Below the pieces are notes generated by a model that saw only the letters and a list, made by a program, of their open reading frames with translations, was not told where the DNA came from and did no database searches. From positions 159,507 through 223,506 of IMG/VR virus record IMGVR_UViG_3300038465_000091: a stretch of DNA of 64,000 bases; one strand, given 5' to 3'. This document shows, one piece after another, positions 1,496 through 63,773 of this stretch. The position numbers and the translations under genes are program-made. The number at the start of each line of letters is the position of its first letter. Within the stretch, counting starts at the first letter, position 1.

Positions 1496-2947
1496 ATGAG
1501 CAAGTTGATGGAGCAACGCAAAGCGGCACGAACAAAGAAGTCAACGGTTCTTTTGTCCATCGATACGGCTAAGGATGCAGTCAATATCGGTAAGTCGCTG
1601 TTGAACGCAACCCAAGCTGAGGGTCAAAATGATCCGCAACTGGAACAAGCTGTAAGGCACTTGGAAGGGCTGTTAGCTAGTCAGCCAGATCAAATGCAGT
1701 CAGAAGGGGCAGTGAACGTCGAAGATTATTTCGACGATACTATTTTGCCTGAAGTAGCACGTCAAGCCAAAAACGAGGTAGATATGATCGCACAAAAACG
1801 CAGGGAAGCACGTCCCGCACAAGGAACTCAGCAACAGCCAGCTTTGGCATCGGATGAGAAATCCGCAGCCACGGGCACCGATGCTTTCGTGACCGACCGC
1901 GACGAATCGGGTAACCCCAAGACCCCCGAAAAGGCCGAAGTTCCCCGTCTCGCAGCCAAGAAGAAAGAAGCACAGCCCGAAGCTGTGCCCCCAGTCCCTC
2001 CCGTCGCAGCCCCAGCCGTTGGTGGGGGTGGTGGTTCGCTCGACGCCCTCTTCGCCAAGCTGCCGTCTGACTTCCTCGCCGATCTGGTGAAGAAGCTGAC
2101 CAGCCTCGAAGGTTTTGAACAGGACAAGGACGTACAGGCAGCCGTTGAGAATTTGGCTGGAAAACTCCAGCAACGTCCTGTTGAAGCGGCTCCCGTTCCC
2201 GGTGCTCCTGCCGCTGCTCCGACCGCCTCCGTAAAGAAGGGCGGCGACTTTGGCGGTAAGCAAGCTCCTCCGTTCGGTAAGAAAGACGATGACAAAAAGG
2301 ACGACAAGAAAGCATCCGTTGCCCGTCTTGGTTTGAATTTTGTCGCAGCCGAAAAGGTTGCCGTAGCCCCTCCGGGTCGCGAAGATCAGGTGAAGGCACT
2401 CAAGAAAGAAGACGTAGATAACCCCTACGCCGTGGCATGGGCCAGCTACAACAAAGGCGACAAGCAGGGCGCTCTTCGGGCCGCTCATGCGGTGATCGCG
2501 AAGTTCGCTGCCGCTGGTTTCTTCACGTGGGATCAGGCAACTGGCGACGTAACTGAGTCTGGCGGACGCACTCCAGAAGTTCAAGAAGCACACAGCAAGA
2601 TTGATGAAGCTCCCGCCCATCTGGAACGTCCTGATACGACGCTCCCGATCAAATTAGCAGGCGAGATGACGGCTCAAAAAGCTGTAAAGGAGGCGGAAAG
2701 GCTAGGCAACGAGCTTAAAAAGACCTACCTTGACGCCAAATCAATCTGTACGGTGAACGATAGCCGTCCAGTACGTGAGTTTGTAGAGAGTATCTTCCGT
2801 GCGGGCGACATGGCTGATGAGGCGGTTAAGACCCTCAACAAGCAAGTCATGCAGGAAGAATCCGAAGAAGCGGCTGCAAAAGTCCGTGAGAAGAGCAATA
2901 AGAAGTCCGCTCTCAACGATTTAACGTTGGCAGCTTCGGCTGAGTAA
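1496..2947 (+). CDS. Putative internal head protein with K-x-A motifs
   Basis: GAGGA RBS then ATG at 1496. Charged/Ala-Pro-rich; contains EKSAA, KKKEAQ, KKAS, EKVAV, DKQG, KKSA and the motifs DAFVTDRDESGNPK and APPGREDQVKALKK..VDNPYAVAW. Confidence 0.65.
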   Translation: MSKLMEQRKAARTKKSTVLLSIDTAKDAVNIGKSLLNATQAEGQNDPQLEQAVRHLEGLLASQPDQMQSEGAVNVEDYFDDTILPEVARQAKNEVDMIAQKRREARPAQGTQQQPALASDEKSAATGTDAFVTDRDESGNPKTPEKAEVPRLAAKKKEAQPEAVPPVPPVAAPAVGGGGGSLDALFAKLPSDFLADLVKKLTSLEGFEQDKDVQAAVENLAGKLQQRPVEAAPVPGAPAAAPTASVKKGGDFGGKQAPPFGKKDDDKKDDKKASVARLGLNFVAAEKVAVAPPGREDQVKALKKEDVDNPYAVAWASYNKGDKQGALRAAHAVIAKFAAAGFFTWDQATGDVTESGGRTPEVQEAHSKIDEAPAHLERPDTTLPIKLAGEMTAQKAVKEAERLGNELKKTYLDAKSICTVNDSRPVREFVESIFRAGDMADEAVKTLNKQVMQEESEEAAAKVREKSNKKSALNDLTLAASAE

Positions 2948-2950
2948 AGA

Positions 2951-3171
2951 TTGCGAGCATCCAGAAATCCCCCAAACCGGGCAACCGCAGAGGGGTCAGT
3001 ACGGGATGAGCGGCAAATTGAATAGCCGCTTGTAAGCACCGAGGTGAATGCTCGGCTCGCAAAGATTCGGGGAACGAAAAACGCCGGGTCATCGTGTGGT
3101 GAATTTCACTGCCTTAGGTCCGTTAAGGTTACGAGCGATGAATTGGAACGAAGGTAGTAACGTTCCCCGAG
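2951..3171 (+). ncRNA. Putative structured ncRNA with two multibranch domains
   Basis: Nested complementary stems: 2951-2958/3055-3062, 2958-2962/3004-3008, CGG-GCAA-CCG (GNRA loop), 3009-3014/3025-3030, 3066-3076/3161-3171, 3089-3094/3136-3141. Confidence 0.55.
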
Positions 3172-3239
3172 TAGTAATTTCAGTTTTCTGGATTTCGCAA
3201 CTGTAGTGTAGAAACCCCTTTTATAGGTGGGAGGCAAAC

Positions 3240-3905
3240 ATGTCCGAAGGTGGATACGTATATCGACAGGGTACATCACCCAACACTGAGACTGTAATCT
3301 CGTCTCGGTTCAAAATCTTTACAGATGCCGTTGATGTCGGCAAGTTCGTAAAGCTGGGCGTAACCTCGTCCTTCACTTACTCAGAATCGAAGACTGTCGA
3401 TGCGGTTCGCGGCCTCGGCTACGGCGATCAGGTTGCGGAACTCGTTCCCGGCGTGACTCAGCCGCTCAGCATTTCGATCACCCGTACTTGTCTGTATCTG
3501 GCGAACCTCATGCAGGTTGTCGGCTACAAGGCAGGCGTGAGCGGTGCAGTCCGCTCTCTCAAGCACCACCGCTGGCCGTTCGACATCAAGCAGGAGATTG
3601 TATTCTCCCAGCTTGCTACCGAAGACCCGAACGTTGGTCAGGCAACTCTGGCTGACATCCCGAATGAAGGTGGTCTGAACAACCTTGGCAACCCCGGGCT
3701 GCTCGCAATCGCGACAGTGTACGAGGGCTGCTGGATGGAGTCTTACAACACGGCGTTCACGGTTGACACCGCCGCCGTCACCGAAGATTGCACCATCACT
3801 GTCACCGACATTTTCGATGTCGCTGGCTCTGTCTACGGCGAGTTCCTTGACGCAGGTCTCAACACTGGGGATGCCACTGGACGTTCACTCCTCTACAGCA
3901 CCTAA
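3240..3905 (+). CDS. Tail tube protein
   Basis: GGGAGG RBS; near the sheath gene; tube-like pattern LGVTSSFTYSESK..AVRGLG..ELVPG..ISITRT.LY..YEGCWMESY. Confidence 0.75.
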   Translation: MSEGGYVYRQGTSPNTETVISSRFKIFTDAVDVGKFVKLGVTSSFTYSESKTVDAVRGLGYGDQVAELVPGVTQPLSISITRTCLYLANLMQVVGYKAGVSGAVRSLKHHRWPFDIKQEIVFSQLATEDPNVGQATLADIPNEGGLNNLGNPGLLAIATVYEGCWMESYNTAFTVDTAAVTEDCTITVTDIFDVAGSVYGEFLDAGLNTGDATGRSLLYST

Positions 3906-3961: not shown

Positions 3962-5653
3962 ATGACGCCTAGAAACCCACTCCTACAAAAAAGAGCACTC
4001 GACGAAACCATGGTCATGTGGAACGACCCTGATTACGCCGAAAATCAACACCACTCCGATCCCAGCTACACCACTCAAAACGGCAAGGATTACGCGGGAC
4101 GCGGCACCACTGAGAATGAAGAGGGTGCGCTTAAAGATGGCATCCCCGCAGGTCTCCTGTCGGTTGAACTCGGCAAAGAAGCCGCAGGCAGTACGGACCC
4201 CGTTGACTTGTTAAGGCGAGCGGCGGATACCCTGCAAGGATATTGCGCCGAGGTCAATGGCGACATGAACGATAGCTTGGCGACGGAGATAGAGGAGTAT
4301 CTCGCCCAACAGTCTCAACCCAAGCAAGCCGATACGGGCAACCCTCACGTCACTACGATGCCAAGTGCGCCAGCCCCAGTCGATCCCGATAACGCAACGT
4401 TCTTTAAGGAAAGTGAACCGAGTTCGCCGTTCACTGACGCTGAAGAAAAAATTAACGCCGCAGCCGCAGGTAGTGGTTTCCACTATGTGGGTCGCGTTAC
4501 AGACGGGACTACACTGTGGTACAGGGGGAAAGACGAACGTTTGTCGTTTGACCCTAAGACTGGAAACGTCACGCACCTGAGGGACGGGAAAGTTGTATCG
4601 GAATGCCCCATTAACCAACTCGGACGTATTAAGTCTGCCGCCGATAGCTTTCATGCGGCCCTGAAGAAGGGACTTAAGCAGGGCGCAATCCGCCCATCTC
4701 CCCACACTGTGTTTGAAAACAAAGTTGACAATGCCACGGGGAAACAGCCCATCGCACCCACGGAACCTTCCGATGATGAGGTGATGAAAGCTCAAAAAAC
4801 CCTCGAAAACGCTGGGGTTGGCGATCAAATTGGTGTCAACGCTTCGAAGACCGTCGAGGTTAAGGAGCTTGGAACCAAGATGAGCGGCTTCACTGGCGGC
4901 GGGCCGTTTAGCTGCATGGATTGCGTGCATCGTACTCCGCACTCTAAGAACGCCAAGGGCGAAGAAGTTGATTCGTGCAAGCATCCCGATGTGATGGCCG
5001 ATCCCGAGCTTGCAGATCGCAAACTCCCTGACGGAACTATCGAAGTTGACGCTGATGATTGCTGCCGTTTTGTAAGGCCGACGAAGAAAGAATCCGAGAA
5101 GGAAGCGGCGGTCACCAAGACCTACGGCACTGGCACACCTCCGGGCGGAACGCCCAATGATCCGAGTATCGACGATGAAGACGCGGACGAAGGGAAGACC
5201 TCTAGCCAAAAGCGAGCGGATGTTGATATTCACGAAACGCCGAAGTTCCTCCCGCCTCGCGATGACATTCGTCGGCACCTCGACAAGGATGTGCAGGATG
5301 AAATCACCGATGAGGTGATGGAAGGCGTGAAAGACGCATCGGAAGAGGGCGAATACTACTTGGATAAAGTTCGTGACATGAAGAACGAGGCCAAGGAAGC
5401 GTTCATGCAGGATGGTTCCATGCAACAAGAGGCTCAGGATGCGGGTATGAGCATGGAAGACCTGTGGAAAGAAATCGGTGGGGAGTTCACCGAGAACTAC
5501 TATATTTCGGCCTACTCCAAGCAGGGGTCGATTGCGGTTGAAGAGGGGTTTAAGTGCCCTAACTGCAAGAGCCTGAAGGGGAAACCAGTCGAAGATGGTT
5601 TGGACGACACGGTAAGCTTGCGAGAGTGTTTAACTTGCGGGAGCTTTTACTAA
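3962..5653 (+). CDS. Mosaic putative internal head protein (K-x-A delimited modules, Zn ribbons)
   Basis: 563 aa with QKRA, GKEAA, PKQAD, FKES, IKSAA, EKEAA, QKRAD, VKDAS, SKQGS separating unrelated segments; CxxC motifs (CMDC; CPNC...CLTC). Confidence 0.6.
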   Translation: MTPRNPLLQKRALDETMVMWNDPDYAENQHHSDPSYTTQNGKDYAGRGTTENEEGALKDGIPAGLLSVELGKEAAGSTDPVDLLRRAADTLQGYCAEVNGDMNDSLATEIEEYLAQQSQPKQADTGNPHVTTMPSAPAPVDPDNATFFKESEPSSPFTDAEEKINAAAAGSGFHYVGRVTDGTTLWYRGKDERLSFDPKTGNVTHLRDGKVVSECPINQLGRIKSAADSFHAALKKGLKQGAIRPSPHTVFENKVDNATGKQPIAPTEPSDDEVMKAQKTLENAGVGDQIGVNASKTVEVKELGTKMSGFTGGGPFSCMDCVHRTPHSKNAKGEEVDSCKHPDVMADPELADRKLPDGTIEVDADDCCRFVRPTKKESEKEAAVTKTYGTGTPPGGTPNDPSIDDEDADEGKTSSQKRADVDIHETPKFLPPRDDIRRHLDKDVQDEITDEVMEGVKDASEEGEYYLDKVRDMKNEAKEAFMQDGSMQQEAQDAGMSMEDLWKEIGGEFTENYYISAYSKQGSIAVEEGFKCPNCKSLKGKPVEDGLDDTVSLRECLTCGSFY

Positions 5654-15673: not shown

Positions 15674-18600
15674 ATGCCTAATGGAAAAATCAGTCAGCTT
15701 GCCTCAGGCATCCCCGCCCAAGGTGGAGACCTGCTCCTCATAACACGCATTGGCTCGCCCAATCAAAGCCTTTCCGTGTCGGCGGCGAGTGTCGCGGCTC
15801 TGGGCGGTGGATCGTTCACCAATCTTGCGACTGGCACCAACACCGCAGCCACATTTACGATAGGCAACGGAGCATCACTCACGTTTTCGGGTATCACATC
15901 CCCAGTCATTACGCAATTAGCTACGGCGTCAGCTTACGCCATCCTCGGTGCATCAGCAGTCACGAACTCGGACGGTGCAAGCACCATAATCAGCGGCGGG
16001 AACATCGGCTCCTTCCCGACCAACACAATCACGCCGGGAAGCCCGCCATGGACTCTTTCGGGTGCAGCAGTGATTACGGCAGTTGCTCAAAACCAGACAG
16101 ACTTGGCTACAGCAATCGCAACTTACCAAGCGATGGGGCCGGGAACCGCCCTTGGTGTGGCTCTCGACGGCCTAACCCTCACCCCCGGCGTTTACAGCGG
16201 CGGCACTTTCACCATCAGCGGCGGAACACTAACTCTCAACGGCGCGGGCGTTTACGTTTTCCTCGCCTCAACTACGATTGGCTTGACGAGTGCTTCAACA
16301 ATCATTCTGGCAGGTGGTGCAACAGCCGCGAACGTTGTTTTCGTTTGTGGCAGTTCATTCACCGCAGCCGCCAACGCTGGCACCGTGTTCAACGGCAACA
16401 TTCTCGCACATACCTCCATTACAGTTGATGGCGGTATTTACAACGGTCGGTTACTTGCCAATATCGGAGCAGTCACCATTTCTACCGCTACCACCATCGC
16501 TACACCAGTGGGCTCTTCTCTTGGCATAATCAATGCGAATGAAATTTTCGGCGTGGTTGTTAGCGGGATAGCCCCAACCGCAGGACAAGTTCTCACAGCA
16601 ACAAGTGCCACAACAGCGAATTGGCAAACTCCCAGCGGGGGCGGCGGTTCGGGAACAGTGACCTCAGGCACCGTGGGACAAATCGCTATTTATGCAGCCA
16701 GCGGCACTACGGTTAGCGGCTTTTCCAATGGCGTGTTTTACCCCGAGACGTATGGCGCGGTTGGCAACGGTATCCACGATGACACTACAGCCATCCAAGC
16801 AGCAATCACAGCCGCTTCAGCGAGCGGTGGAACAGTTCAGTTTGGTGTCAAGACCTACCTTATCACTGCTACGCTTGTAATCACCTCCTCTAATGTCGGC
16901 ATGGCGGGATTGACCGCAGGTACTCCCGTTGGGGGAGGCGCTAGTGGAACCATAATCACTTGCAACAGCGCAACTGTCGATATGGTAAATGTCGGCAACG
17001 GCGGCACACAGGTTCACAGCAATCTTCTAAAAGACTTCTGCCTTGCACGATCCGTCACTCCCACCACTGGAAACGGACTCATACTGAACAGCGTGATCGA
17101 TGCCAAGCTGGAAAACCTCTGGGTCTTCGACAGCATCTTCTGCTTCTATCACCAGAATGCCCAGCTTTGCACGTACACTAATTGCTTAGCTGAATGGACG
17201 GCCCTCAGCAACGGCATCACGGGATACGGCTTTAAGATGGTGGGAACAAACACTACGGGGTTCTTCTCTACGCGAATGACGGACTGTATTGCCATCAACA
17301 AAGCGTCCTCAGGAACTTTCCATGGAATGCACGTAAGCACTTCGGGGGCTGGAGTATCCGATCTTTTCACCGAGGGTTTCGAGACGGCCTCATGCACGTA
17401 TGGAGTGTACATCGACGGAGCTTCATCTAACTTCAACGAAGATATTCATTTCTTAAGAACCATCCACGACGCTTCAACTGTGAGTGCTTTTTATATCACA
17501 GGTTTGAACGGGCACGACGCTTACGTAGAAATAAACGGCGGGTACACAGCTAATCTTGGGTCGGCACCCGCTATCGACATCGAGAACAGTTCTGGAGTTG
17601 TAGTTAACAATGTCAATTTCATCGGGCTCAACGCCGGTACTGGTCCGTGCGTCCTAATAAATGGTTCTAGCTCAAAAGGTAATATCGTTCAGTCGAACGT
17701 GATGTACTGTAGCTCTACGTCGCAGACCGTGATTAGCCTTACGGGGAGTGCCGCGAATAACAACGTCAGCAGCAACATCATAGTTGGAGCCGTGCACAGC
17801 TTCGCCGTTGGTATCGGTCTGGCTTCGTCGTCATACAACACGGTTGACGGAAACACGTTGTCAGGTACGGGCACAGTAGGAATTTCATTGGACACTGGCA
17901 GTGGGCACAACGGTGGAGTCAACGTAGTCGATCCCACATCTATCACAACCCCTCTATTGGATCATGGCACGGGGAATTTCGTTACGATCACTGGAGGCGG
18001 CGGTTCGGGAACGGTCACTCACACGGGTTCGTTGACTTCAAATGCCATCATTCTTGGCAATGGCTCTGCGGATATTAAACCGGGGGTAGTTCTTCCCGGC
18101 AGCGTGACGGTCTATTATGACGGTACGGGAAATTTCAGCGTGCCGGGAGGTGGAGGGGGAAGTCCGGGCTCCCTATTTGCTAAAACGTGGTTTACAACGG
18201 GGCTGGCGGGGCAGAGAGCAATAAATACTGTCTATCAGAACACCACGGGGCAACCCATCATAGTGTTTGGGTGGATGGTGGGAAATAACAACGATCTTCA
18301 AGCCGTGACCGATGCATCTCCCACCCCGTCTACAGTAGTGTTAGACCAGTATGCCCAGTCGGGATTTGGCACCAATTTCTTTTTCATGGTGTCTAACAAC
18401 GATTACTACGAACTCATCTGCGTTGGTGGTACTTCTGTAGCTTGGGTAGAGTTGGAGATTATCACAGGGAGCGTTACATTTTCAGGAGAATTGTCGGGCA
18501 GTCGTTCGCTAAGTACGGTTTACCAAAACACCAGCGGCGGAGCAATGCTGGTGCTGGTCGATCTTTCAAGCGTCGGTGGTGGTACAACCATCCAAGGTAT

Positions 18601-61000: not shown

Positions 61001-63773
61001 GAAGTTCGCCGACGTTCCTCAAGACATCGACGATATTTGGTCCGAGACGATGGAAGACATGGGGCCAGCCCCCGAGATTAGACTCCCGGGCGAAAGTATG
61101 GACAATGAAAAGTCCACCACGGGGGAACACGAGATCGAAGCTCCTGAGATGAGCGCAGACTCAAGAAGTGACGTTCCCGAGCAGGTCAAGGGCGATCAGG
61201 AAGAGCCGACCGTAAAGGTTGAAGAGGCTCTTGAGAACGATACCACCAAGTCCGAAGAAGACGAGCCGAGCACGGGCGACGATGGGGCATCGGCGGACTC
61301 GAAAGAACCGAAGTCCGAAGGTGGGAAGTCCGAATGGTCGAAGAATCGCAGCAAGGGTAAGTCAGAAAAGAAAGACGAACCAAAGGAAGAGAAAGAGTCC
61401 AAGGAAGCTTCGAAGATGGCAGCCGCCAACTCCAGACCCCGCCAGCGTGTCCATTGCGACCGCTGCGAGATGCTGAGTATTAACGGCACCGCAACCCACG
61501 AAAGGGGTTGCCCCAACCAGAATTCTCGTTGGGATTCCACTCGACAGGACTGGGTAAAGCAACGTAGGTGCGCTGAATGCGGAATGGACGTTGACGCGGA
61601 CGATCCGTGTTGTTCTGCGGAGCCTTCATTCGATGAAGACGAGGGACGTTTCGCTGGACTCGACACCATCCTTGCCGATGGTAACGAGACGGCACTGGAC
61701 CAAATGGAAGAAGCTCAAGCAACGGCACCCGCAGTATTCTACGAGTGCGGTGCCTGTGGCGGCGTTCACCCATCTTTAGAGACTTCTGAGAAGCTCGGAC
61801 TCGGCTGGAATGGCGACTGTCGCGATGAGAATGGTCATTTCGAAGAGAGTGACGTTCCTTTCGGAGACAACACCCAGCTCATCTCTTTGGATGAACAGAT
61901 GGCTCCAGATTTCGACGACACGATTCTGGCGTCGGGAGAATCCAAGACGGCGGACGGTGAACAGTTCTGTACCGAATGTGGACGCCCGATATCCCTCGAT
62001 ATGGACAGTGAGGGTGTCTCGCACCACTTAACCGATCTCGGTGAGATCGATTTCAATGCGGACGCTGACCATGTGGCTTTGGCAGAACAATTTGATGGTG
62101 GGCTTGAACAGTTCATGGAGCCCGGACACGAAGAGTCTGAGAATCCGTTAGCTGAACTTGACCAACTCATGGAGCCCCAGCACAAGCGTCGTCGCTCGTC
62201 TGAGGAAAAGACGGCAGATTATGCCGAAGATGATTTCGCATCTTACTTCGGAGAAGCGGGGAAAATTCAAGCAAATTACGCGGAAGGTGATGAGTTTCGG
62301 CTGTCTGAAGATGCCCTTGAAAATTACGGGGAAGAATATCGAGATGGGGTTTTTACAGTTGATGCAGTGTACGACCATTATGTTCCTTCATCATCGATGG
62401 GAAATGATCGGACAGGATCGCCCGGTTTCGATGAAAGTGCAGGCACCGCTCTTTACGGGTCAGAGTTGAATTTCGACGTGTATGAGTGGGAAATGGAGCC
62501 CGCAAACGCTGGGCACGAAGCATCCATTAAGCAGGCAGATACCGCTGACAATCCAGCAAACGAAGCGGACGGCGAAGGTGCCATCGAGGTCAAGACGGCT
62601 GGTCGCTCCTCTACACCGAAGTACGTGATTCGTATTCCGGGCTCTACCGACGCTGCGTGGAACGTGACTGGTTACGGGCAACAGCGCGGTGCAGGTCAGC
62701 CAAATCAAGCGAACCTCGCACGGTACATGGAAGCTCTTCTGAAGAGCATGGAACCCGGTGGGCATAACGAGCATCTGGTGGGGCATTTCGATCCAACCGA
62801 AGCTGCGATTTACCCCAACAACGGCACCTACAAGGACCCATTGGCTACATGGTCAAAGGAAGATGAGATTTATCCCAGCGATGCCGACAACGACAAAGCT
62901 CTCAAAGAAATTGAGAGTTCTGATGTAAGCGGCGACTTCTCGGAAGCTAATTCTGAGGTTGAAAGCCCAGACACAGTTGACACGGACATCAAGCAGCCGA
63001 CTGAATCGGTAGGCGAAGCTGGTAAGCACGCGGCTGACATCTCGGGGGATATCTCTGAGGCTAAGTCGGAAGTTGATTACAACAAGGCGGACGTTGCGGA
63101 CGAGGCACAGGCGACGGATACAGTTAACCCAGACCATTTCGCCGCTGAGCAAGAGTATTGGGATAAAGAAGCGGCGGATGGGTACGAAGTCCCTTCACAA
63201 TACCGTAAGGATTCCGCTGAGGACGATGCGGAACCCGCTGATGAGGAACCAGACGAGCAGCCCGCTGAGGTTGAGGACTCCGATGAGGGACCTGCCGATG
63301 AGGACAAGCCAGCAGCTAAGCCCGCCGAAACTGAAGACGAGCCTGCTGTGAAGAAGCAGACTGATGAGTCAAAGGGCAAGAACAAGCCCGCCGAGACTCC
63401 GGCTGCGGACGCGAAAGCGCCTGCGGCAGCACCAGCCGCACCCGCAGCGGCTCCAGCAGCACCAGCAGCAGTGGCTCCAGCGGCAGTAGCCGCTCCAGCA
63501 GGTGCGGGTGGAAATGGAACCTCGGAAACTTCGGGCAACGAAACATCGACCGAAACTGGCGGCTCAAGTCCGGGCGGTGCATCAACCGGCGGCGTAGGTA
63601 GCGGCATGGGTGGTGCAGTGGTCGCGGAACTCGGCACCGATGCACTTAACGCACATCAAGCTGATGATAAAACAGCGTGTGCAGGTTACGGCGATGAGGA
63701 AGATGAAGAACGCCGCATCGACTCGGGACTCGGAGACCTTGGCGATTTAGTTGTGGAGAAGGAAATCGACTAA
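58086..63773 (+). CDS. Giant mosaic polyprotein 2 (1895 aa), putative virion cargo
   Basis: About 230-aa globular N-terminal domain followed by many modules split by KTA/KEA/KVA/KSA/KQA/KIA/KFA/KMA/KHA; acidic tail. Confidence 0.75.
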   Translation: MANSVSGNSIASKSFQSLAISEALLSKTVEAIKAGEKEARSTGVPQSFEAMYRGFRQNIAIGKIVVVPPAVADKKGQDFPTALLYGCLVRTFGGEEMGDLISHKIGDSEWDEYSQASYSSIKEELFGTEDGKFACLVLFIPNWVNKREYVGFQFPKDDNQLTNLTRHLVFSSYFDPRLSSAFDAMMTDVETSKFDVTDITPKLNFPALAENPLKEYPLLTKEGSQKKPRLGLTIKTADEVTKAVLEPQEMDVFESLDTALRNSLLPSDSKGVEDASEGKAPTKGEMVPRLSSKEAEYQPKTGQPCTCRPGVQRDNCPQCEGTGQRIDFAAIRKQNGPKSGSTKVAHGYIAFYGNKRVEVQADTLWGAKQKAIEMLKVPKSKQGLLAIELAEKDGEQVTTTITSSATAVFETPITNVGPGTEAHDEANQRTEGYKDEKDTPKAVINSAPIGIALDETGVPRRAEEERKEKSAARNFYKPPTDPQAENVKVVENHKYTQFNEKPDGTSYWKSPIGTTAVLYPNGSWMHTGGKGDGPNALSELLISYHHERVPKVGKTAAYGDRRDYPKIDLFVNGEYVASTTWASNIKEAIQKYEEKNPGPWAGEVKAQYDKRASDKQAKRVEGLTSTGDVERLAAQTQEDDLSASASAAWDAARKGGKEAKEGLEKHADKMKEYASSLSQDNQAHHAVADHKKEIAAGKYGPTPLSISSSEKDKATDPQAVRDHIKKNVSQARQGQDALKDHHASFDAEKWGGLGKKQASALWVGSAKKIAAEFDEFTHGYIETALWSSNDESDPSGGQPLDANYDIRDLSPSCLQAMTEDCAKFQAENAELLAAASEQDGQDGFRQGHDFWLTRCGHGAGYWDGDYPTTGDGLTEASEAWGNVDIYVGDDDMIYQYGSETGVSEKFPSHQGPMASSKKASKKTASQNDASYIASLIGGGFGGEDYDARSQHSKTAAQKREDEMARKYSSQRKKFADVPQDIDDIWSETMEDMGPAPEIRLPGESMDNEKSTTGEHEIEAPEMSADSRSDVPEQVKGDQEEPTVKVEEALENDTTKSEEDEPSTGDDGASADSKEPKSEGGKSEWSKNRSKGKSEKKDEPKEEKESKEASKMAAANSRPRQRVHCDRCEMLSINGTATHERGCPNQNSRWDSTRQDWVKQRRCAECGMDVDADDPCCSAEPSFDEDEGRFAGLDTILADGNETALDQMEEAQATAPAVFYECGACGGVHPSLETSEKLGLGWNGDCRDENGHFEESDVPFGDNTQLISLDEQMAPDFDDTILASGESKTADGEQFCTECGRPISLDMDSEGVSHHLTDLGEIDFNADADHVALAEQFDGGLEQFMEPGHEESENPLAELDQLMEPQHKRRRSSEEKTADYAEDDFASYFGEAGKIQANYAEGDEFRLSEDALENYGEEYRDGVFTVDAVYDHYVPSSSMGNDRTGSPGFDESAGTALYGSELNFDVYEWEMEPANAGHEASIKQADTADNPANEADGEGAIEVKTAGRSSTPKYVIRIPGSTDAAWNVTGYGQQRGAGQPNQANLARYMEALLKSMEPGGHNEHLVGHFDPTEAAIYPNNGTYKDPLATWSKEDEIYPSDADNDKALKEIESSDVSGDFSEANSEVESPDTVDTDIKQPTESVGEAGKHAADISGDISEAKSEVDYNKADVADEAQATDTVNPDHFAAEQEYWDKEAADGYEVPSQYRKDSAEDDAEPADEEPDEQPAEVEDSDEGPADEDKPAAKPAETEDEPAVKKQTDESKGKNKPAETPAADAKAPAAAPAAPAAAPAAPAAVAPAAVAAPAGAGGNGTSETSGNETSTETGGSSPGGASTGGVGSGMGGAVVAELGTDALNAHQADDKTACAGYGDEEDEERRIDSGLGDLGDLVVEKEID

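Follow-up and report, generated by a model that had tools for sequence, protein, structure and literature searches.

Between two tail-region genes of a soil jumbo phage we found two separate, compact RNA modules, one of which belongs to a previously undescribed phage RNA family whose conserved core is the antisense of 23S rRNA nt 1909-1941 (helix 69 and the start of helix 70; 28 of 33 positions identical, E 9.9e-6). The same 20-mer recurs on the transcribed strand in unrelated phages, and this suggests that phages may use RNA to bind or disable the large ribosomal subunit, although pairing with rRNA is inferred here from sequence and structure alone. The sequence examined (the window) is a 64-kb stretch forming the end of a 223.5-kb IMG/VR viral contig, which is estimated to be 71% complete and whose nearest cultured relative is Tunturiibacter phage Tunturi_5, a 309-kb jumbo phage of a soil acidobacterium. 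All long ORFs around the modules are on the + strand: a tail sheath fragment (119-1036, PHROG tail sheath), a 144-aa ORF, a 487-520-aa protein with no family hit, the 292-nt gap of interest (2948-3239), a 221-aa tail-tube-like protein, a 563-aa ORF (3962-5653, no family hit), and then a prohead protease. The relevant features are as follows.

1385-2947, + strand: upstream virion-protein gene, homologue of Tunturi_5 gp328 by synteny with PP885688, with its TAA stop at 2945-2947; no Pfam or PHROG hit and no confident match in an Atlas search.
2950-3064, + strand: domain 1, a 115-nt cloverleaf-like RNA module with an 8-bp closing stem and three arms, a clade-specific insertion placed directly after the stop codon.
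3067-3175, + strand: domain 2, the "anti-H69" RNA module, with stem P1 at 3067-3076/3161-3170, stem P2 at 3089-3094/3136-3141, a lineage-specific hairpin at 3098-3110, a small hairpin CGU 3121-3123/ACG 3131-3133, and a conserved purine-rich joining segment UUGGAACGAAGG at 3143-3154.
3101-3133, + strand: core of domain 2, complementary to 23S rRNA nt 1909-1941 (E. coli numbering).
3176-3239, + strand: ancestral leader of the tail tube gene, with a small hairpin UUCAG-UUUU-CUGGA (3179-3192), TTTCGCAA (3193-3200), a TAGAAAC motif (3209-3215), and a hairpin overlapping the Shine-Dalgarno GGGAGG (3215-3234).
3240-3905, + strand: tail-tube-like protein gene (221 aa, ATG at 3240), whose Atlas neighbours carry the Phi812_tail_tube, Phage_tube_2 and T4 gp19 families; 188 relatives were found in IMG/VR.

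A first-pass annotation of the sequence had proposed a candidate novel ncRNA of about 220 nt, lacking any recognizable tRNA, riboswitch, or ribozyme consensus and lying between a head-type gene and the tail tube gene. We began by examining each of the stems it listed, and all are present in the sequence. In domain 1 these are TTGCGAGC 2951-2958/GCTCGCAA 3055-3062, CATCC 2958-2962/GGATG 3004-3008, CCCC 2970-2973/GGGG 2992-2995, CGG-GCAA-CCG 2978-2987, and AGCGGC 3009-3014/GCCGCT 3025-3030, together with a fifth hairpin that had not been listed, CCGAG 3040-3044/CTCGG 3051-3055. In domain 2 they are TCGGGGAACG 3067-3076/CGTTCCCCGA 3161-3170, TCATCG 3089-3094/CGATGA 3136-3141, GGTGA 3098-3102/TCACT 3106-3110, and CCTTA 3112-3116/TAAGG 3124-3128. 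Folding energies beat those of shuffled sequences only moderately, with z-scores of -2.7 for the whole gap (about the same on either strand), -3.3 for domain 1 (MFE -44 kcal/mol), and -2.9 for domain 2, so the real support for these structures is comparative. The proposal of a novel structured ncRNA was otherwise supported. None of the 4227 Rfam 15 models matched the window at gathering thresholds or the 2800-3400 interval at E<=10, which includes riboswitch, self-cleaving ribozyme, and group I intron models, and ARAGORN found no tRNA gene in the window, with domain 1 resembling a cloverleaf in outline only. There is likewise no interrupted host gene as expected for an intron, since the upstream ORF ends in a conserved TAA and the downstream gene has its own SD and ATG. 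No sigma-70-like promoter was found, nor any terminator-like site in 2700-3500. No ORF is conserved either, as the homologues of domain 2 vary in length from 76 to 109 nt through indels that are not multiples of three, a locus (L004) whose tail tube protein is 99% identical has a 1-nt deletion, and ORFs 3044-3157 and 3048-3206 are not kept. The earlier proposal does require refinement in three respects: there are two independent modules rather than one 220-nt RNA; the head-type label for the upstream gene is unverified, as this gene has no family hit and is called a DNA ejection protein in Tunturi_5; and the antisense relationship of the domain 2 core to 23S rRNA had been missed.

To determine how the two domains are distributed, we collected 80 loci through the tail tube protein (individual loci, here and below, carry the prefix L) and compared their gaps by blastn. 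Window 2948-3060, corresponding to domain 1, exists only in the closest relatives, and even loci whose tail tube proteins are 96-99% identical (L004, L005, and L012) lack it, whereas the following ~110 nt, corresponding to domain 2, is found much more widely. The gap ranges from 53 to 294 nt among relatives, and ten lineages carry an extra ORF within it. These ORFs are free-standing homing endonucleases of three families (GIY-YIG with NUMOD3, endonuclease VII, and ParB_N-type), making the gap a hotspot for genes that typically target constrained sequence. When such an ORF is present, domain 2 stays attached to the stop codon of the upstream gene. Relatives lacking both domains keep a 53-150 nt gap containing a TAGAAC-like motif, a covarying hairpin, and an SD in front of the tail tube gene, while Tunturi_5 and L082 also have an intrinsic terminator after the upstream gene. 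Window 3176-3239 corresponds to this ancestral leader, and therefore the two domains sit at the 3' end of the upstream transcription unit. We also considered TTTCGCAA as a shared late-promoter word, but it is not enriched in the window, with 50 matches against 67 expected. Domain 2 is absent from a complete 300-kb relative and from Tunturi_5, indicating that it is an accessory element, and neither domain has another copy in the phage's own contig or in the genomes of five relatives.

Next, we built a covariance model of domain 2 from 25 sequences, which recovered 40 matches in viral and metagenomic loci, 30 of them distinct. Overall, 94% of cells are paired, and the outer stem P1 is 98% paired with both-side changes at 6 of 10 pairs. 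Every measure exceeds 500 of 500 shuffles and all slid controls. P2 covaries as well (UCGUCG/CGAUGA, UCGUCG/CGACGA, GCUAUC/GGUAGC, GCUUC/GGAGC, and GUUUC/GAAAC), and the three-pair CGU/ACG hairpin has one compensatory change. In contrast, GGTGA/TCACT is lineage-specific and CCTTA/TAAGG is not conserved as a pair, the latter stretch being part of the conserved rRNA-antisense core. Across all modelled pairs, G-U outnumbers A-C 25 to 6, which fixes the + strand as the RNA. Given its location, we were interested to determine whether the element might instead be a riboswitch-like or translational 5' leader for the next gene downstream, which is the tail tube gene or, in some relatives, an endonuclease gene. 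In L017-type relatives, the ParB_N ORF appears by eye to start at the AUG inside the conserved joining segment (AUGGAAACGG), with the 3' strand of P1 inside its first codons, and the window clade has a possible 13-bp G-U-rich alternative pairing between 3063-3075 and 3183-3195. However, when we tested whether the joining segment (UGGAACG) competes with the 5' strand of P1 for the 3' strand of P1, the alternative hairpin was no better than shuffles (per-sequence p values of about 0.1-0.9), and L180 changes P1 without changing the segment. The element also remains with the upstream stop codon when a gene is inserted downstream, relatives without it keep their own promoter-like motif, hairpin, and SD for the tail tube gene, no riboswitch model matches, and in other phages the motif is followed by a terminator rather than a gene. 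Thus, a leader function seems improbable.

The conserved block of domain 2, CUUAGGnCCGUUA(n)GUUACG, led us to scan IMG/VR, where one hit was a genuine 23S gene on the opposite strand. Against the E. coli rrnH operon, window 3101-3133 aligns by blastn to the minus strand of 23S 1909-1941 as described above, in agreement with an alignment to a metagenomic 23S, while other family members give E 2.6e-5 to 1e-3 at the same site and domain 1 gives no such similarity. The numbering correctly places the known modified bases (pseudouridines 1911, 1915, and 1917; m5U1939). A looser complementarity scan using pairing-matrix local alignment placed the best site at 23S 1880-1965 in 8 of the 9 anti-H69 elements tested, although the background of this method is high and the z-scores were modest, reaching 3.8 at most and being near zero or negative for three of the nine.

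Outside this family, the 20-mer occurs in about 25 distinct non-rRNA contexts in IMG/VR, and the loci holding it gave no Rfam match on the motif itself. In 18 of 19 intergenic cases, the nearest upstream ORF is co-directional, usually ending 2-25 nt before the motif, and a terminator often follows on the same strand. In two unrelated groups, that ORF is the major head or virion structural protein. Other copies lie in tRNA arrays, such as one locus (L115) in which a stem-closed module carrying the motif abuts tRNA-Ser and another (L097) in which it follows tRNA-Val, two copies lie beside ROOL RNAs, and cultured Vibrio phages (PWH3a-P1, qdvp001, and others) carry it in an unannotated region. In several groups, the motif folds as a two-tier hairpin whose 7-nt loop UAUAGUU is the complement of the helix 69 loop. 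In three groups (8 of 25 instances), a second segment, UCGCUAC(C), complementary to 23S 1930-1936 (1929-1936 with the trailing C), sits in another hairpin loop 20-50 nt downstream, which is the reverse of the order in rRNA, whereas a reversed control 7-mer occurs 0 times downstream. The permuted segment argues against simple inheritance of an rDNA fragment and for selection to match rRNA.

These results also bear upon whether the element acts at the DNA level, either as a homing-endonuclease target or as a relic of endonuclease-driven capture of rDNA with incidental RNA folds. The 20-mer appears to be the reverse complement of most of the I-CeuI-type recognition site in 23S rDNA, metagenomic 23S genes carry insertions right beside it, the gap is an endonuclease hotspot, and the element has a patchy distribution among close relatives. 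However, a double-stranded DNA site should not care about orientation, yet 18 of 19 intergenic copies are co-directional with the upstream gene, the stems covary with a G-U over A-C asymmetry that only RNA on the + strand explains, the inserted endonucleases are not LAGLIDADG, and several endonuclease-bearing relatives lack the element. We consider this explanation unlikely.

To look for evidence of a discrete RNA, we examined assembler contigs from five peat metatranscriptome runs (X1-X5) that contain parts of the region. Runs X1 and X2 have contigs extending from the upstream ORF into domain 1. Run X4 has a 311-nt contig (depth 26, the highest seen) that contains exactly 3067-3175 without a mismatch. 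Its 3' flank is the first 43 nt of the phage's own tRNA-Met, starting at the ARAGORN-predicted mature 5' end, and its 5' flank is the 3' end of an unannotated structured region between two tRNAs at about 61.5 kb of the contig. No contig from X4 covers the native flanks of domain 2, though contig holes prove nothing. Run X2 has a 171-nt contig reading 2950-3064, then 26 foreign letters, then 2950-2979 again, which is a 141-nt cycle, since 171 = 141 + 30 and Logan uses 31-letter words. The junction sequences are absent from IMG/VR, so they are not genomic arrangements represented there. The simplest reading is end-to-end joining of abundant small RNAs, either by template switching or by ligation, which would make 2950/3064 and 3067/3175 true RNA ends lying just outside the closing stems. 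It should be noted that this rests on one chimeric contig per domain, taken from assembler contigs rather than reads, and that a circular or tandem form of domain 1 is not excluded. Domain 1 itself is known from five variants, in which the closing stem is almost unchanged (one U-A to U-G change), the CAUCC/GGAUG stem has two compensatory changes in one relative (CACTC/GAGTG in L208), the AGCGGC arm is absent in three, and one-sided changes are G-U compatible on the + strand. It is a recent insertion between the stop codon and domain 2.

Taken as a whole, we favor a model in which both modules are transcribed at the 3' end of the upstream transcription unit and are probably released as discrete RNAs, with the P1/P2 clamp of domain 2 holding a core that pairs with large-subunit rRNA, either in free 50S subunits or in late assembly intermediates where this region is exposed and helices 69-71 are probably mobile. 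Such pairing would tether or sequester the large subunit late in infection. We assign this reading a probability of about 0.45. It lacks physical evidence for pairing, and several observations weigh against it. Helix 69 is a folded hairpin in mature ribosomes, and the middle of the anti-H69 loop is variable in this family, so a simple loop-loop kiss is not conserved here. The window's own clade has U opposite U1923, and the element is dispensable. Moreover, substitutions in the unbiased, protein-anchored set are not clearly enriched for wobble-compatible changes, with about equal numbers of compatible and disruptive changes, while the larger tally is circular because the search patterns fixed most positions, leaving only the free N position informative (purine in 50 of 56 distinct motif variants).

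The principal alternative is that the modules are cis-acting 3'-end punctuation, cut out by tRNA-processing or other RNases, which protects the upstream mRNA from 3' exonucleases and uncouples it from the tail tube mRNA, with the rRNA likeness an accident of origin such as a captured inverted rDNA fragment. This is consistent with the transcription-unit boundary in the gap, where relatives have an intrinsic terminator plus a promoter-like motif but the window has no canonical terminator, with RNA ends just outside the closing stems and joined to a mature tRNA 5' end, with similar modules abutting tRNAs in other phages, and with the dispensability of the element. In addition, weaker collinear similarity to antisense 23S extends by eye 5' of the core (UCGUGC, ACGCC) with helix 71 deleted, as expected for descent from rDNA. 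Nevertheless, the rRNA-like core is the most conserved part of the family while the stems drift and covary, unrelated phages keep the identical 20-mer in quite different scaffolds, the permuted second segment is not readily explained by descent from rDNA, and ordinary terminators already do the protective job in those phages. Thus, we regard this alternative as possible but doubtful.

Neither Rfam nor full-text literature searches, including one for the exact 20-mer, yielded a report of a bacterial or phage RNA that targets helix 69 by base pairing; the literature searches returned only rRNA probes and I-CeuI vector sites, and the 2023 catalogue of viral structured RNAs does not mention 23S. 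The nearest analogies are only partial. The TURBS motif of caliciviruses and influenza B and the BTE-type 3' translation enhancers of plant viruses probably also display a conserved rRNA-complementary stretch near a stop codon or in a 3' UTR to hold a ribosomal subunit, but they pair with small-subunit 18S rRNA in eukaryotes, and TURBS lies upstream of the stop-restart site, whereas the present element is bacterial, lies after the stop codon, and also occurs in tRNA arrays as a free-standing module. The Coxiella burnetii 23S group I introns Cbu.L1917 and Cbu.L1951 apparently carry guide sequences complementary to the same 23S region (about 1917-1951) and may affect ribosomes, but they are self-splicing introns of several hundred nucleotides inside the rRNA gene with short guide sequences, while this element is about 105 nt, is not in an rRNA gene, and carries about 33 nt of antisense. 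The ROOL and GOLLD RNAs (Rfam RF03087 and related; bioRxiv 10.1101/2024.12.08.627333) are likewise phage-borne structured RNAs of unknown function found beside tRNAs, but are 500-800 nt and are not reported to resemble rRNA, and this element matches neither model. Finally, the UAUAGUU loop hairpin in unrelated phages has the geometry of a kissing complex, as is likely for CopA/CopT and RNAI/RNAII, although the proposed target would be rRNA rather than an mRNA or primer.

Even on the conservative reading, domain 2 represents a new, well-supported RNA family with cultivable carriers. More tentatively, diverse phages, including peat jumbo phages, Vibrio phages, and others, may encode small RNA modules, placed after the most highly expressed late genes or in tRNA arrays, whose displayed loops base-pair with helix 69-70 to capture, tether, or inactivate the large subunit or its late assembly intermediates, which would be an RNA-based way for viruses to manipulate the bacterial ribosome. 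Helix 69 forms the main bridge between the ribosomal subunits, contacts tRNAs, release factors, and the recycling factor, and is nearly invariant in bacteria. If these modules bind it, they would reveal a new layer of phage control over host translation and give a natural RNA ligand for a known antibiotic-binding region, and they could also account for some of the unannotated structured RNAs found beside phage tRNA clusters and ROOL RNAs.

Inspection of the gap between the upstream virion gene and the tail tube gene revealed that it is a hotspot for free-standing homing endonuclease genes of at least three families (GIY-YIG/NUMOD3, endonuclease VII, and ParB_N), as found in the related loci L015:3304-3990, L017:3509-3940, L026:3555-3935, L027:3490-3975, L034:3085-3768, L058:3090-3989, L074:3039-3767, and L081:3017-3970. 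Some of these genes are located directly after domain 2, while others are found in relatives that lack it. In L017 (3444-3560), and also in the relatives L148, L158, and L206, the ParB_N-type ORF, as read by eye, seems to start at the AUG inside the conserved joining segment of the RNA (AUGGAAACGG) and to read through the 3' strand of the outer stem P1 (coding A-V-P-E) into a conserved YTDPF motif, whereas the same place in the window clade gives only a 4-codon frame (UUG GAA CGA AGG UAG).

The leader of the tail tube gene also contains a hairpin that is located immediately 5' of (or overlapping) its Shine-Dalgarno sequence. This hairpin, found at window positions 3215-3234 and at the same place in the related loci L018, L054, L055, L065, L068, L036, L023, L016, and L080, covaries among relatives (GCCCG/CGGGC, GCCCC/GGGGC, GCCGCC/GGCGGC, and AGCC/GGCU). 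As it is preceded by a TAGAAC-like motif, it may be a promoter plus a 5' stabilizing stem. In addition, a 13-bp, G-U-rich alternative pairing is possible between window positions 3063-3075 and 3183-3195, i.e. between the 5' strand of P1 (AGAUUCGGGGAAC) and GUUUUCUGGAUUU downstream, although it is kept in the closest relatives only.

Outside of this family, the motif antisense to helix 69 (anti-H69) was found in other contexts. In two loci, ROOL RNAs (Rfam RF03087, 203-215 bits) are located on the same strand just upstream of an anti-H69 motif (L084:1174-1817, minus strand, and L122:65-1681, plus strand), with tRNAs lying between them in L122. The cultured Vibrio phage PWH3a-P1 and four relatives carry CCUUGGGACCGUUAUAGUUAUGG in an unannotated 475-nt region with promoter-like boxes (locus L234; NC_020863.1 80,653-81,128), and a downstream hairpin loop there holds UCGCUACC. 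These phages make a practical test system. The metagenome contigs L153, L166, L185, L200, L207, and L212 are genuine 23S rRNA genes in which unrelated sequence abuts the CCTTAGG block, which is consistent with introns or insertions at about position 1931, a known intron hotspot.

The metatranscriptome contigs further drew attention to sequences joined to the two domains. In run X2, the joint 3064>2950 between two copies of domain 1 consists of the 26 letters GGGCACGGGAAACCGTGCCCCTGCCA, which form an 8-bp hairpin with a GAAA loop and a tail ending in CCA. These letters were not found in the phage contig when allowing up to 3 mismatches, nor in IMG/VR as an exact match. They could be a minihelix-like RNA joined in the library or part of a 141-nt circular or tandem form of domain 1. 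Two non-coding or unannotated regions of the phage's own contig (G000:C1) were also noted in the vicinity of its tRNA genes:

About 16,850-17,160, minus strand (locus L228:1531-1840): about 300 nt of non-coding sequence with a TTGACA-like box, upstream of the phage tRNA-Met.

About 61,430-61,670, minus strand (locus L229:1500-1735): an unannotated stretch of about 200 nt between two tRNA-like genes in the phage's tRNA cluster.

A partial tmRNA-like match (E 0.003, cut by the locus end) is also present at L228:2993-3030. As for the stretch within the tRNA cluster, its 3' end (…GGGACACACAUGC) is joined to the 5' end of domain 2 in a metatranscriptome contig, and it may be another stable phage RNA.
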